Positions 23,352 to 30,600 of a DNA stretch of 64,000 nt are shown piece after piece (position 1 is the stretch's first letter; every line of letters starts with the position of its first letter). The stretch is from NCBI GenBank assembly GCA_010909165.1, contig MU008197.1:62001-126000 (forward strand), in the 5' to 3' direction. The notes below the pieces were generated by a model. That model made no database searches, was not told where the DNA came from, and worked only from the letters and a program-made list of their open reading frames with translations. The position numbers and the translations under genes are program-made. The stretch is from Anthoceros angustus. Taxonomy: Eukaryota; Plantae; Anthocerotophyta.

Positions 23352-24685
<1,334 letters not shown>

Positions 24686-25162
24686 GGTATGTACGTACAC
24701 TCCATGGGAATGTTTCCGGTGCATCAGGTAGGTCTTGCCAATTGCCAGACCTAGAACTGCTTTGTTGGCGCCTGTCAGGCCAGCAAGGAAAAGGTGCATG
24801 TATGTTCTGTCAACCAGAGCTCTGTATAAAAACCCGAATAATGTTTGCCAAGCAATTGCTGCTGGCTAGTAGGGTAGCAGGTAGGTCCAGCTGAGCTCTC
24901 TCTCTGAGAGCCACATTTGTAGCCCATAAGACATTGCATTGGAATACAGCCAAATTGGCTGTTGAAGTCCCATGGTTGTTAGATGCGAATCGGCTGGTGA
25001 AGGCCGGTGATGTGGAGCTGATATTGGTAGGGTGGGATGCTAGAGCACAAGATGCTTTGTGATCTTGCCACTGCAACGTTCAGCAATTGAATTGGCCCCT
25101 TTGTGAATCAAATTAGTGGAGAACTAATCTTCCTACAAATTTGTTTTTGTGACACGCCTCTT

Positions 25163-26647
25163 CTACGAGAACTTGCAGTACAGGCAGAGGAGGACGACTA
25201 CTGGTAGCAGAGTTTGCCAGTGCAGTTCATCGGCCGCTATAATCTCAACAAAATTACCTGGAGGGGATAGTCCCAGACTTGGTGGCCTGTGATCGTCAAG
25301 AGGTGTGAAGGGTTGTTCTGCGAGCATTTCCAGCTTCTGGACAGGGAGTGCACCTTGCTCACCAGCCTGCGGTGGATCGGACCTGGGTTCGTGATGGACA
25401 TACACAACCTTCCCTGGATCTCGCCTTCCATGTAAGAACTTGGCGGCCTTGTCAGCGGAGAGACCCGACAGCGGACCCAGATGCCAAGTCAGGGGCTCCC
25501 TAGGTATTGCCTGCTCCCCCATAGCCTGCACGGCAGCTTCCGCAATCAACGGCCGCACATCTCGAACTTTGTGCCCAGATCCAGATGCTGCAGTTGGATG
25601 CACAGCATTGGTAAGCAGCGCTACAAACAAGTTTTGATCAGGATCCATCCACAGTGACGTGCCAGTGAAGCCAGTATGTCCAAAAGTTCGGGGCCCGAGG
25701 AACCGTCCTGCAGAAGTATAGCCATCAAAAGACCTGCGCACTGCCACATCCCAGCCGAGAGCAAAGGGGCGGGGATTGCGTGCTGTCTGGGGAGCTGGAG
25801 TGGTGAACAACCTCACAGTCTGCTCCTGGAAAAAGCGCCTGTTAGTGGGCAGGTCGATGCCTCCAGCCAGCATGAGCTGAGCAAACCGGCACACATCCAC
25901 GATGGAAGAAAAGAGGCCCGCATGCCCGGCCACACCTCCCAGCAGAAAAGCTGTAGGATCGTGAACTTCCCCCCAGAGAAGACGATTCCTGTGCAACAGA
26001 TCCACCTCCGTGGGAACCACAGAGGGATCGAAGTCGGAACAGTCTGTTGGCCGAAAATAAGTGTGCTTCAGGCCCAAGGGCTCGAAGAATTCCCTCGCAG
26101 CAAATTCGTCCAAGGAAAGCCCAGAAATCCGCTCCACAACCAAGCCGAGCACTATCATGGAGAGGTCACTGTACCGTGCAGTGCCCACCGCGTACCACAG
26201 CTTGTCGTTCATGATGTAGTCCAAAACCTGCTGTCTTGTGGTGAGGCCCATGCCGAAGAAGTCGTAAAATTCGCGCAATCCTGCAGTATGGGCAAGCAGT
26301 TGCCTCACGGTGACGCCTTCCTTGCCGTTGTTGCCGAACTCTGGAACGTACTGGCAAGCCCGAGCATCCAGCTTGAGCAAGCCCCTGTCATACAAGAGCA
26401 TGATGGAGGGAGTTGTGACCATCACCTTGGTGACAGAAGCCATGTCCCACACAGATTGCGGGGTCACTGCAATCGTGGACTCGTATGTCAAGGTCCCGTA
26501 TGCTCGATAGTAGACCGGCAGATTGCAGGACCCAAAACCCACAGCTCCTCCTGGAAATACACGATCCACGCTGGCCTTGTGCATGATGTCTGACACAGCA
26601 GGGTGCTGATCCGCGGGTGCCATCAAGCTCGCACATAAGGCTGCCAT
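25163..26647 (-). CDS. Beta-lactamase-family (class C/PBP-like) serine hydrolase, intronless CDS, hydrophobic C-terminal tail
   Basis: 494-aa ORF with catalytic SVTK, YSD, GEVHDP..GGVAGHAGLFS and GHTGFTGTSLW. In-frame TGA 9 nt upstream of the ATG. Ends LLPVVVLLCLYCKFS. Confidence 0.88.
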   Translation of the reverse strand: MAALCASLMAPADQHPAVSDIMHKASVDRVFPGGAVGFGSCNLPVYYRAYGTLTYESTIAVTPQSVWDMASVTKVMVTTPSIMLLYDRGLLKLDARACQYVPEFGNNGKEGVTVRQLLAHTAGLREFYDFFGMGLTTRQQVLDYIMNDKLWYAVGTARYSDLSMIVLGLVVERISGLSLDEFAAREFFEPLGLKHTYFRPTDCSDFDPSVVPTEVDLLHRNRLLWGEVHDPTAFLLGGVAGHAGLFSSIVDVCRFAQLMLAGGIDLPTNRRFFQEQTVRLFTTPAPQTARNPRPFALGWDVAVRRSFDGYTSAGRFLGPRTFGHTGFTGTSLWMDPDQNLFVALLTNAVHPTAASGSGHKVRDVRPLIAEAAVQAMGEQAIPREPLTWHLGPLSGLSADKAAKFLHGRRDPGKVVYVHHEPRSDPPQAGEQGALPVQKLEMLAEQPFTPLDDHRPPSLGLSPPGNFVEIIAADELHWQTLLPVVVLLCLYCKFS

Positions 26648-27677
26648 GTCATGTCAAGGCCATCGCCCACTTCTTGAGCTTGGCATCGTACGATTTCTCC
26701 GTCCTTCCATGATGCAGGATGTGCTCACATCACAGCTCCCTGGAAAAGCACAAGACAGTACAACACGTGAGACCCCACCTGGGGGTGGGGGAATTTCAAC
26801 ACACGAAACCAACGGCCAGTGCACACAATTTTGGTCCGCCTCGGCACCTTTTCAGAGCAAGCAGTCGACGCAAAGACTAAAGAAAGCGTGAACTACCAGG
26901 AGAACACGGATACCACAGGCATGTACCAGCACAAGAAAAAAATCACGTCAGTTCGAAAAGATCCTGCTTGCAATTCGGCCTTGCTAGAGAAAGGCGTCCA
27001 GCACTGGCGGCATCATCAGGACCCGGGGGGGCCTGGATCAGCCGTCCCAGGATGGGACCCATCAACGCAGGGGGAACCTTGGGTGACATGGACTTCGACT
27101 GACTCGGGGGGCTATGGGGCTGTGCCTCTCAGACTATCCGCCCAGCCCAGCCCAGGCATGGAAGACGGTCTTCCAACCGGCAAGATCATGCAGATCCCTT
27201 CTCCAGGTGGGTGCTGTGTGTCTGCTGTTACGAAGGAGTTGGGGGACAGGACAGCTAAACCAACACTCCAACCTCCAGACCGCGCAACAGCAGTGATAAG
27301 CCAAAAAGACTCGGTGTGTTAGGCACGGTGGCAAAGACACATGGCCTGCGATGTCCGCTAGTCTTGCTTTTCCACTAAAGTACAGCGCCCTGGCCACCTG
27401 CTAGTAGGAAGCGGCAAAGGAAGCAGCTCACGGAGAGAGAGAGGAAGCCACCAGACACGAGCCCGAAACGCAGCAATCCGCAGGCTCGGAACCCACCTCT
27501 GACTCCCGTGTGGCAGGCAGCTTTGACATTAATCACTCAGCAGATGTCATGCCACAAATCCGGCAAGGCAGAAGCGGCCAGGAAGATTAACCTGGGTGGG
27601 CACCCGCCTGACCCATGGGTTGGAGGACGGGTAACCTCCAGCCCCGCAGTCTGCAAGCAGCTCTCTGGGCATTGGCA

Positions 27678-30600
27678 ATGGCTTCCCTTCTAGCCTGTTT
27701 CACCACCCGCCTGTCGCTGCCCCTGCACTTGTCCGAGGCTCTCTCCTCGACCCATTCGCATCTTCCCTCTTCTTCCTCCGCCTCCTCGGCGTCGGCCCTC
27801 TCCTCACTGCACCTCCCGCTCTGCGTCTGCCCTGCTGCGCGCGGCCGGGGCCGGGGCCGGGCCCGGGTAAGACGAGGTCTTGCCATTTCCGGCATTAATT
27901 CCCACGGTAGAAATTTCCCGGCAGCGGCCTGTTCCGTCTGCGCGACACCCTTCGGCTGGCTCAGGGCTGCGTCTGGAGTCTGTGACGGCGGCAACACCCG
28001 GCTGCGCATTCCACCCTCCCGGGGGCGAAGGCGAGGCACGCAAGGTGGGCTCTTGGTGCCGTTTCTGGCTTGTTGGGCGATTTAGAGCTCTGGATTTCTC
28101 ACCATTGGAAATTGCAGGCGAATCGGAGGCTTCCCGGAGCTGGAGTGACAGAGGTCTCGCGAGTTTGCATCCGGGCCCGGGAGCCGCTAGGTGCATGGCT
28201 ACTGTGACTGAGGAGAGAGTGGAGAATCCACTTCTGGTGGCTGCACAATTCCCTCTTTTTGATAAAGTGGATGCCTCCCATGTGCTTCCTGGCATCCGAA
28301 CAATTTTGAAAGAGCTCGTAAGCATGCATTGTTTATTCGTCCTGGGGCATGGTCAATGGCAGTCTTTCAAGAGCGGGCTGCTCGGCAGTTATGTTGCATG
28401 AAGGTTCGAGGCAAAAGTGGGGTACCTGAAGCTGTGTGTCTCTGCAGGAGCAAGAGCTCTTGGACCTGGAGAAGAATGTCAAGCCCACATGGCCTGGACT
28501 GGTGGAGCCACTGGAGAAGATTGTGGACAGGCTTTCCGTGGCTTGGGGCACGGTCAGCCATCTGAAGGCAGTGAAAGATTCTCCAGAACTTCGGGCAGCT
28601 GTGGAGGAAGTGCAGGTGTGCTGTTTGGACTGGATATTTAGTACATCTTTTACTCAGTTATGTGTGTGACGCAAGTTGGGACTTATGTTCGACCATGTTT
28701 CTTGACACTCGTGTTTTGGGATGTTTCAGCCTGAAAGGGTTGCCTTGACTCTGAGGCTTGGTCAAAGCCGTCCAATCTATGAGGCTTTTACGGCCATTCA
28801 TGAAGGAGTGCATTGGGAATCGCTAACAGAAGCTCAACAACGCATTGTTGAAGGTAATGAAGCCTAGATGCTAGGTGAGTCTGTGTTTTTGGTTTTTGTG
28901 GATACAATTGTGTACGGCAGACATGTAGTAACAATGTTGGTTTTTCACTTGATGAGTAGCTGAGTTGAAGGAGGCTAGCCTTAATGGTGTGGGTCTGGAA
29001 GGAGAGGGGAAGACACGTTTCAATGAGATCCAGCAGGTGGCTCCTTCATTCTCGAACTCTTATGAACTAATGGAGAGCACTGATGACCATAGAGAACTAA
29101 TTATCTTACTAAGCCATGCCGTTCTTGTGCAGGAGCTTGAACAATTGTCAACTAAGTTTAGTGAGCATGTTTTGGATGCCACCAAAAAGTACGAGAAGCT
29201 CATTTCGGATCCTGCTGAAATTGATGGGTTGCCACCATCTGCCCTTGGCTTGGCTGCACAAACAGCGGCTTCTAAGGTGGACTATCGCTTTTAGATGCTG
29301 CCTGTGTGGGATTCCCTGTCAATGTCCAGTGTTGGAGATTGTATTGATGGTGAAATTCGTCCGTGGCTGAAATGCTCTCACAACAGGGTCATGAAGGTGC
29401 TACGGCTGAGAAGGGGCCATGGATGATTACTTTGGATGCACCCAGCTACATGCCAGTCATGCAGCATGCACGCAATAGAGCCCTGAGAGAGGAAGTGTAT
29501 CGAGCTTACTTGACTCGAGCCTCAAGTGGAGAACTGGACAACACTCCCATCATAAATAGAATTTTGGAACTTCGGCTGGAAAAGGCGAATCTCTTAGGCT
29601 ATGAAAATCATGCTGAGGTGAGCAATCAGTGACTGGGGCATGAATGCGCAAGGATTCTGTCTATTTAGTAATAGTGCAAACGATAACCAATCTAGATGTC
29701 CCCATTGATTGCATGTTCAGGTAAGCATGGCCTTGAAGATGGCAACATTGCGTAGAGCTCAAGAGCTTCTGGAGCAGCTGCGTGGCACATCTTGGGATGC
29801 CGCAGTTAAAGGTAGTGTACGACATGCTGTCGTTGGTCCCCGCAGTCTAAGCCACTTTCATGTGTTCATGAATGTGTTTAGCACCTTGAGAATTTAGTGC
29901 AAAGTGCATGTTGCAGATTTGGAGGATCTGAAAGCTTTTGCCAAAGAGCAAGGCGCGCCTGAGGGAGATGATATGAGGCACTGGGATGTCACCTTTTGGA
30001 GTGAAAGACTTCGGGAAGCCAAGTTTAGCATCAATGAGGTGGGCAAAGCGATTGCAGCTATTTTGCAAGCCAGCTAGGTGATGGAAGTTTCACAATGTTG
30101 ATACGAAGATTTTTGTTTGGGTTTCCAATTGCAGGAGGAGTTAAGACCTTTCTTTTCACTACCAAGGGTAATGGATGGTCTTTTTAGCCTTGCTAAGATG
30201 CTGTTCGGAGTAGAGATTGAAGCCGCTGATGGACTGGCACCTGTAAGCTTGCACACAATCGACTTTCTCATTTTTGATCTGCTCGTGTATTTTGAATTCA
30301 CTGGGTGGTCACGCTTTACCAGATCTTTGCTAGTTTCTCACTGTTTTAGCATTTTTCCAGATTTGGCACAAAGATGTCCAGTTCTTTAAGGTGAAGGACC
30401 TAGCCGGGGAGCCTTTGGCATACTTTTACTTTGATCCATACTCCAGGCCGTCTGAGAAAAGGGGAGGTGCTTGGATGGATGAAGTGCTTGGGCGCAGTCG
30501 TCTGTTGGCACCCAATGGCAGTCGTGTTCGTCTACCTGTTGCACACATGGTGTGCAATCAGACTCCACCTGTTGGTGATCAGCCAAGCCTAATGACCTTC

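Follow-up and report, generated by a model that had tools for sequence, protein, structure and literature searches.

The murQ-murR-murP-amiE-nagZ-namZ operon of Bacillus subtilis encodes three exo-enzymes that act in the order NagZ, AmiE, NamZ (PMC8054146, PMC5061867), and its AmiE (YbbE) belongs to PF00144 (PMC10653849, Table 1). In Escherichia coli, yfeW, the gene for penicillin-binding protein (PBP) 4B, belongs to the N-acetylmuramic acid (MurNAc) catabolic operon murQ-murP-yfeW (PMC5061867), and the fusion of GH3 and beta-lactamase domains has been described for RmNag3 of Rhodothermus marinus, the function of the extra domain being uncharacterised there (PMC6987092). Among plants, the toolkit for plastid peptidoglycan is reported from bryophytes, including all surveyed hornworts (PMC8964177), and from Chloropicon (PMC10784329), as well as from lycophytes, ferns, gymnosperms, and streptophyte algae; the bifunctional class A PBP of the pathway is found in no angiosperm (PMC12681378). 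Work on plastid peptidoglycan has so far centred on biosynthetic Mur and PBP genes and a few lytic enzymes. Here we describe a gene for a PF00144 serine hydrolase in the hornwort Anthoceros angustus, located at 25163..26647 on the minus strand of a 64,000-nucleotide (nt) stretch of DNA (the window; GenBank assembly GCA_010909165.1, contig MU008197.1, positions 62,001 to 126,000), to whose first letter all coordinates refer.

This is a real, intact, transcribed nuclear plant gene and not a recent transfer. Its identity, ancestry, intron loss, and architecture are together secure, and we hold them with high confidence. The best reading of the product is a tail-anchored MurNAc-peptide amidase or peptidase tied to plastid peptidoglycan turnover, a function that we infer largely from its bacterial relatives. 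The explanation as a whole, which joins ancestry, intron loss, and tail anchor to a muropeptide-directed enzyme, seems to us somewhat more probable than its competitors combined.

Gene structure, catalytic domain and C-terminal tail

The open reading frame (ORF) runs uninterrupted through 494 codons plus a stop and forms a single-exon coding sequence (CDS), as indicated by the ORF list, a stop codon upstream, and transcript coverage. Assemblies of four public runs were placed on 24300-28800: one of DNA (X1) and three (X2, X12, and X21) that are recognized as RNA-derived because they contain splice joints and the DNA run has none. Of the RNA-derived runs, one is from the organism itself and the others are from two close relatives, one apiece. 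Coverage of 24491-26738 is gapless in each of these three assemblies, and hence the CDS is free of introns in no fewer than three species; the genes on either side are both spliced. An in-frame TGA lies two codons 5' of the ATG within the same exon, so that the upstream exon is non-coding and no leader peptide could be added by it.

The transcript carries an intron in its 5' untranslated region (UTR) (26740..26926, minus strand, 187 nt, with GT..AG borders on that strand), which is spliced in X2, X12, and X21 and unspliced in X1; one relative splices via a nearer donor, skipping 87 nt only (in window coordinates). The intron separates exon 1 (26927..27419, minus strand) from the UTR part of exon 2 (26648..26739, minus strand) in the transcript contigs. 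Exon 1 is traced as far as 27419, where X2 record 10 stops; this 5' limit belongs to the contig and is not a mapped start site. The spliced leader, of about 585 nt up to that contig end, contains 12 upstream ATGs (uATGs), which suggests either translational control or a start site downstream of the contig end. Tiny upstream ORFs begin at the uATGs at 26663 and 26652, the second of which overlaps the main start codon.

The catalytic domain, of the PF00144 (beta-lactamase/transpeptidase-like) family, was recognized by Pfam at residues 27-353 (25589..26569, minus strand) with an E-value of 5.9e-63 and 213.5 bits against a gathering cut-off of 27. The domain begins about 17 residues past the methionine, and the N-terminus is short in all orthologs; together with the upstream in-frame stop and the non-coding upstream exon, this indicates that a signal or transit peptide is absent. 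The expected motifs occur in order on the minus strand: SVTK (residues 71-74, 26426..26437), which supplies the nucleophile S71 and K74; YSD (159-161, 26165..26173), the counterpart of the YxN of class C enzymes and PBPs; and HTG (324-326, 25670..25678), the counterpart of KTG. Between the last two lies a subfamily signature, common to E. coli PBP4B, that comprises GEVHDP (226-231) and GGVAGHAGLF (237-246) and spans 25910..25972 on the same strand. When 55 relatives from plants, algae, and bacteria were aligned, S71, K74, Y159, S160, H324, and G326, together with most residues of the signature block, proved invariant, and D161 nearly so.

An AlphaFold2 model (mean predicted local distance difference test score [pLDDT] 81, predicted template-modelling score 0.78) is confident for a globular domain up to about residue 400, the pLDDT of the catalytic domain being mostly above 90. 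Foldseek matched it with probability 1.00 to many PF00144 structures, with target-normalised template-modelling scores of up to 0.77. Compared with a related species represented by contig L084, the ratio of nonsynonymous to synonymous substitution (dN/dS) in the domain is 0.06; identity to the same species is 81% in the domain and 24% in the linker that follows it. These values indicate a functional copy under purifying selection, with a linker that is apparently free to vary. The GC content of the gene region, 0.52-0.57, is similar to that of its flanks.

The linker (residues approximately 386-474; 25226..25492, minus strand) is variable and probably disordered: residues 413-474 have a pLDDT of 36-45, identity is low, and the region is not alignable among plants. 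It leads to a confidently modelled (pLDDT approximately 90) hydrophobic helix at residues 477-493 (25169..25219, minus strand), a putative tail anchor with one residue after it. The best 15-residue hydropathy window of the whole protein is 479-493 of 494, and no other membrane segment is present. The same layout of short N-terminus, variable linker, and C-terminal hydrophobic segment is common to land plants, Spirogloea, Klebsormidium, Chloropicon, Picocystis, and Cymbomonas, the segment usually having Trp and basic residues ahead of it and an internal Pro; bacterial relatives have no tail segment. It follows that the anchor has the age of the eukaryotic clade itself and is no novelty of this lineage.

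The first-pass annotation, made from the letters of the window, had described an intronless CDS between intron-rich genes, the SxxK, YSD, and HTG motifs with the GEVHDP..GGVAGHAGLF block, the lack of an obvious signal or transit peptide, a C-terminal extension of about 100 residues with a hydrophobic end, and a likely splice acceptor in the 5' UTR at about 26740, and all of these agree with the transcripts, alignment, and model described above.

At 26384-26409, within the CDS, the contigs of the DNA run break, and two alternative contigs of 55-56 nt bridge the gap; this is the pattern of a heterozygous or variant site.

Green-plant ancestry and loss of introns

The best word-search matches of the protein are plants and green algae, which rank ahead of bacteria. 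Two protein searches were made, and the best 120 matches of each, all scoring above about 270 bits, were considered. Identity is 72% to Sphagnum, 71% to a moss cluster with Physcomitrium LOC112274301 and Ceratodon, 70% to Riccia, 68% to Diphasiastrum, and 61% over 97% of the length to Marchantia paleacea, which clusters with M. polymorpha Mp5g10020. Further matches come from Ginkgo, Psilotum, Spirogloea, Mesotaenium, Closterium, Klebsormidium, Chloropicon, and Picocystis, and the second search, with a seed-plant-type member as query, added Mesostigma and Cymbomonas. Green orthologs, which are annotated merely as "hypothetical" or "beta-lactamase-related," span 55-72% identity across mosses, liverworts, a lycophyte, a fern, Ginkgo, streptophyte algae, and prasinophytes. 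Bacterial matches start at about 52% in the protein search, the best genome loci being those of Rhodothermales at 48-49%. No angiosperm was among the best 120 matches of either search, and no red-algal or glaucophyte member was seen in them.

A maximum-likelihood tree of 65 rows (LG+C20, rooted on E. coli PBP4B), with which a quick tree of 102 rows agrees, places all eukaryotes in one clade (support 100/99, recovered in 100% of bootstrap trees). Prasinophytes branch first, then Klebsormidium, then Zygnematophyceae, and then land plants, which form a clade of their own (100/98), an order that matches the species tree. The window protein pairs with Logan transcript P0016, apart from mosses, liverworts, the lycophyte, the fern, and gymnosperms. 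The eukaryote clade as a whole is nested among sequences of Rhodothermota and Bacteroidota (96/98). Since a single green clade follows the species tree, the transfer must be older than the green-plant radiation, and the simplest history would be one passage from a bacterium to a eukaryote that predated the divergence of chlorophytes and streptophytes, with vertical descent and losses thereafter.

Two other accounts of the gene's origin can be weighed against this tree. Many plastid-related genes derive from the cyanobacterial ancestor of the plastid, deep single-gene trees can mislead, and the distribution of the family echoes that of the plastid peptidoglycan pathway, all of which would suit endosymbiotic gene transfer in place of a Bacteroidota/Rhodothermota-like donor. 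However, no cyanobacterium is found in the best 80 of 597 confirmed bacterial loci or among the named matches of the two protein searches, the sister group is well supported as Rhodothermota/Bacteroidota, and no member from red algae or glaucophytes was seen; we consider a cyanobacterial source very improbable.

The second is that this lineage gained the gene horizontally in recent times, or that the sequence stems from a bacterial contaminant or a faulty assembly, as an intronless CDS of bacterial type among intron-rich genes might seem to suggest. It is refuted, and we give it practically no credence: the plant and algal orthologs are closer than any bacterial sequence, they form a strongly supported clade that shares a eukaryote-specific linker and tail, the 5'-UTR intron is spliceosomal, GC content is like that of the surroundings, and transcripts of related species show the same structure with the same neighbour, a gene with an AMMECR1 domain. 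The tiled flanks, the UTR intron, and this shared arrangement likewise exclude a contaminant or misjoin. DNA contigs tile the entire stretch, including both flanks, evidence that is not independent if the run was the source of the assembly; the transcripts of the relatives are independent.

The proposal of the first-pass annotation, a horizontally acquired enzyme domesticated in a plant genome, survives in modified form. Bacterial ancestry is upheld, by nesting among Rhodothermota and Bacteroidota sequences of which many are fused to GH3 NagZ, and eukaryotic features, namely introns and a tail anchor, were indeed added after the bacterial origin. A recent or lineage-specific transfer is contradicted by the vertically inherited green-plant clade, and the anchor was not acquired here.

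The intronless state, which had been taken as a further hint of horizontal transfer, is derived. In exact splice maps of annotated orthologs, where a zero-length Klebsormidium "exon" is a mapper artefact and was counted as a single intron, the genes of Marchantia paleacea and Klebsormidium have 13 coding exons each, and all 12 intron positions and phases (0,1,2,0,1,0,0,1,0,2,1,0) are identical between them, with internal exons of nearly equal length. None of these 12 coding introns is present in the A. angustus copy. Introns were thus abundant in the ancestral streptophyte gene, and their absence here is a secondary loss, not a bacterial relic.

The loss of all 12 introns with retention of the one in the 5' UTR is the pattern of a reverse-transcript intermediate, acting by retroposition or by gene conversion with the gene's own cDNA. 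Counting against such an event, neither a poly(A) remnant nor a target-site duplication was found in the flanks (the longest shared word, 9 nt, is attributable to chance). The missing marks are expected for an old event and are not decisive. Nor did a tblastx comparison of the Marchantia and Klebsormidium flanks with the window give any match. With neither hallmarks nor synteny, retroposition and in-place loss are indistinguishable. The event is old; two relatives with about 95% identity likewise have an intronless CDS. The L084 relative, with about 75% DNA identity and the same AMMECR1 neighbour, is represented by a transcript-like contig, in which the AMMECR1 exons are joined, and so cannot date the loss. 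The locus offers a clean case of 12 ancient introns wholly lost with a UTR intron retained, and a warning that an intronless gene of bacterial type in a plant genome need not mean recent transfer.

Assembled into a sequence of events, these results would have the PF00144 domain pass once from Rhodothermota/Bacteroidota-type bacteria to an ancestor of green plants. During vertical descent its GH3 partner would have been lost, if it was ever transferred, 12 spliceosomal introns would have been gained, and the disordered linker and C-terminal membrane helix would have been added. In the lineage of this genome a cDNA-type event, either retroposition or conversion by the gene's own reverse transcript, may then have stripped the 12 introns and left the single intron of the 5' UTR.

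Two sequences in the tree deserve comment. P0022 (EukProt "Pavlova lutheri") is virtually identical to the Picocystis proteins P0038 and P0023, with zero branch length, and is probably a transcriptome contamination and not a haptophyte ortholog. At about 1393-1456 of L084 the reading frame shifts, between residues of approximately 99 and 123, relative to the window protein, for which reason the P0016 product is only 360 amino acids long; the change may reflect an error of assembly or a genuine frameshift.

Bacterial gene contexts and proposed function

The contexts of the 80 nearest bacterial loci (the best 80 of the 597) were counted, with Pfam confirmation and a neighbour reach of 6 kb. PF00144 forms the C-terminal part of a GH3 NagZ-type protein at 33 of these loci and the N-terminal part of a protein ending in NamZ (PF07075 + PF20732) at 5; it stands alone with a GH3 or NamZ gene within 6 kb at 21, and alone with neither in reach at the remaining 21. 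Fusion to or proximity with NagZ or NamZ thus accounts for 59 of the 80. One Bacillota locus comprises namZ, a BadF-type sugar-kinase-like gene, the PF00144 gene, nagZ, and anmK, with a gene for an M55 D-aminopeptidase about 1 kb further on the opposite strand. Besides the Rhodothermota/Bacteroidota group, Acidobacteriota, Gemmatimonadota, and some Bacillota carry this PF00144 subfamily fused to, or next to, the exo-glycosidases NagZ and NamZ. At five Acidobacteriota loci (L042, L056, L066, L070, and L072), PF00144 is joined to a complete NamZ exo-muramidase in a single protein, a fusion that was not found described in the literature examined, which covers the GH3 fusion only.

These contexts assign the bacterial sister group to the breakdown of peptidoglycan fragments, where it most likely serves as the MurNAc-L-Ala amidase. 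By tree and context, the plant protein belongs to this NagZ/NamZ-linked, AmiE/PBP4B-like subfamily. The name "AmiE-like," used in the first-pass annotation, gains indirect support from the bacterial contexts and none from a direct comparison with Bacillus AmiE.

Lacking a leader, the protein would be inserted post-translationally by its C-terminal helix, which would leave the catalytic domain on the cytosolic side of the membrane of an organelle or of the endoplasmic reticulum (ER). Ser71, with Lys74, Tyr159, and His324, would attack an amide bond of a peptidoglycan-derived substrate, the likeliest being the MurNAc-L-Ala bond, or a D-Ala peptide bond, in muropeptides from plastid peptidoglycan turnover. 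Within the overall explanation, we give not quite even odds to an amidase or peptidase that faces the cytosol and acts on muropeptides as they leave the plastid.

Two observations favour the link. Among the listed matches of the searches, the family is seen only in lineages that are reported to keep the plastid peptidoglycan toolkit, and the absence of angiosperms from the best 120 matches echoes the distribution of plastid peptidoglycan genes. In addition, the linker of two green-algal orthologs contains a LysM (glycan-binding) domain, at residues 456-497 of P0172 (Cymbomonas) and 371-413 of P0195.

Several points weigh on the other side. The tail anchor predicts a cytosolic catalytic domain, plastid peptidoglycan sits between the envelope membranes, and there is no transit peptide. 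The C-terminus past the helix is very short and uncharged, and a short uncharged tail by rule of thumb points to the ER more than to the envelope of the plastid. Selaginella, Micromonas pusilla, and Ulva, from which the toolkit is reported, were not among the best 120 matches, which is weak evidence. The likeness to AmiE comes from fusions and neighbourhoods of bacterial relatives and not from comparison with the Bacillus enzyme, and the 157.7 bits scored against PBP4B (NF002968), the best NCBIfam model (next family, 62.8), are far under its equivalog cut-off of 385. Solved structures match the generic fold only (at most 23% identity), esterases, DD-peptidases, and AmpC scoring alike. Literature searches found no paper, enzyme assay, or localisation for any plant member.

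Several of these points would be accommodated if the gene had the same history and its product acted away from peptidoglycan, as a membrane esterase, a lipid- or peptide-amide hydrolase, or a LACTB-like protease at the ER or some other membrane, on its cytosolic side, the absence from angiosperms then being unrelated to plastid peptidoglycan. Family VIII esterases, acyltransferases, and EstG are the nearest solved structures by both sequence and fold, a ready change of substrate is known from PF00144 enzymes, the co-occurrence with the peptidoglycan toolkit is imperfect, and a cytosolic orientation with a short uncharged C-terminus suits, partly on general grounds, a tail-anchored protein of the ER. 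Such a role would nevertheless leave unexplained the invariance of all catalytic and signature residues shared with the NagZ/NamZ-linked bacterial clade, the LysM domains in the algal linkers, and the restriction of the gene, as seen, to lineages reported to keep the peptidoglycan pathway (PMC12681378, PMC8964177, PMC10784329). We regard it as a serious alternative that is nonetheless rather unlikely.

The location of the wall would instead be respected by a PBP4B- or AmpH-like DD-carboxypeptidase or endopeptidase that trims plastid peptidoglycan, its domain reaching the intermembrane space by an unusual route and its helix lying in an envelope membrane. LysM domains are normally extracytoplasmic, which would fit, as would HTG as the third motif and the fold match to the R61 DD-peptidase; the comparison with R61 covered the fold, and R61 presumably has the same HTG motif. 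The best curated family is PBP4B, which is described as a DD-carboxypeptidase (PMC5061867, its reference 19). This enzyme would, however, need a signal or transit peptide for which there is no room, the tail-anchor architecture predicts a cytosolic N-terminal domain, and the bacterial sisters are tied to fragment-degrading exo-glycosidases and not to wall-trimming PBPs. It appears improbable.

We return to a muropeptide-directed, cytosol-facing enzyme as the preferred reading, and suggest tentatively, as a possibility well short of an even chance, that it is the first recognisable part of a plant route for the salvage or clearance of peptidoglycan fragments: an AmiE-type amidase anchored at the plastid outer envelope, or at a membrane close to it, on the side towards the cytosol. 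If this is true, the enzyme strips peptides from MurNAc fragments leaving the plastid wall at division and was lost together with the cross-linked wall in angiosperms. In the plastid peptidoglycan literature searched, no mention was found of a recycling-type enzyme or of this hydrolase family. The conserved and strongly constrained genes of Physcomitrium (LOC112274301) and Marchantia (Mp5g10020) could provide a handle on the turnover or clearance of plastid wall fragments.

The locus and its product among known systems

Downstream of the hydrolase gene lies a convergent neighbour with an AMMECR1 domain (23363-24685, plus strand), corresponding to the PF01871 gene of L084; its last exon seen (24491..24685, plus strand) is defined by a GT..AG joint from 24352 to 24491. 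The neighbour ends within 24491-25162 (minus strand), the 3' UTR region of the hydrolase gene, and transcripts of the two genes are merged in the RNA assemblies of three species and in the more distant L084, so that the tail-to-tail overlap is conserved. On the other side is a divergent spliced gene (27721..28800, plus strand), with introns at 28043-28115, 28318-28447, and 28613-28726 according to the joints of X2 record 11. The GC-rich (0.60-0.64) gap of approximately 300 bp between it and the hydrolase gene, 27420-27720, looks like a shared bidirectional promoter. A short CCGGCC-type repeat occurs at 27834-27873.

AmiE, an exo-N-acetylmuramoyl-L-alanine amidase, shares its NagZ and NamZ partners with the bacterial sister sequences of the plant clade; it is secreted, with a signal peptide, whereas the plant protein has no leader and bears a linker and a C-terminal membrane helix. 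E. coli PBP4B (YfeW), which is 32% identical over 358 residues (E 6e-47) and whose gene follows murQ-murP, resembles the plant protein in its SxxK, YSD, and HTG motifs and in the signature LWGxVHD...GGVxGHAGLFS. It differs in its periplasmic location, has been described as a PBP of low affinity, and is credited with DD-carboxypeptidase activity; a signal peptide is missing from the plant protein, which, falling below the equivalog cut-off, was classed as a relative of PBP4B only. RmNag3 has the three-domain build, of GH3 NagZ and beta-lactamase domain, of the nearest bacterial relatives (the Rhodothermales loci at 48-49% identity), and the plant protein differs from it in having no GH3 domains.

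More distant comparisons concern the fold. Assignment as a class C beta-lactamase was rejected, at 57.6 bits against an NCBIfam bla_class_C cut-off of 415. AmpC, the R61 DD-peptidase, family VIII esterases, and LACTB have the fold and catalytic motif triad of the plant protein but only 18-23% identity to it, and a tail anchor is lacking in all of them; LACTB, a mitochondrial protein, belongs to a separate clade. There was no AmiE or PBP4B structure for comparison, and the Foldseek and PDB sequence searches returned generic PF00144 neighbours.

The eukaryotic tail-anchored form appears to be undescribed. Literature searches by gene identifier and by topic (tail-anchored beta-lactamase-like plant proteins; AnmK and MurQ in plastid peptidoglycan) gave nothing specific, the phylogenetic-profiling study proposing PPASP does not mention this hydrolase family, and "beta-lactamase" in one survey of horizontal gene transfer is a generic mention only. 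Comparable in architecture are plant tail-anchored outer-membrane proteins such as PDV1/PDV2 and Toc33/34. These are unrelated to the hydrolase in sequence; like it, they have a lone C-terminal helix, do without a targeting peptide at the N-terminus, and carry a large N-terminal domain for which a cytosolic position is expected.

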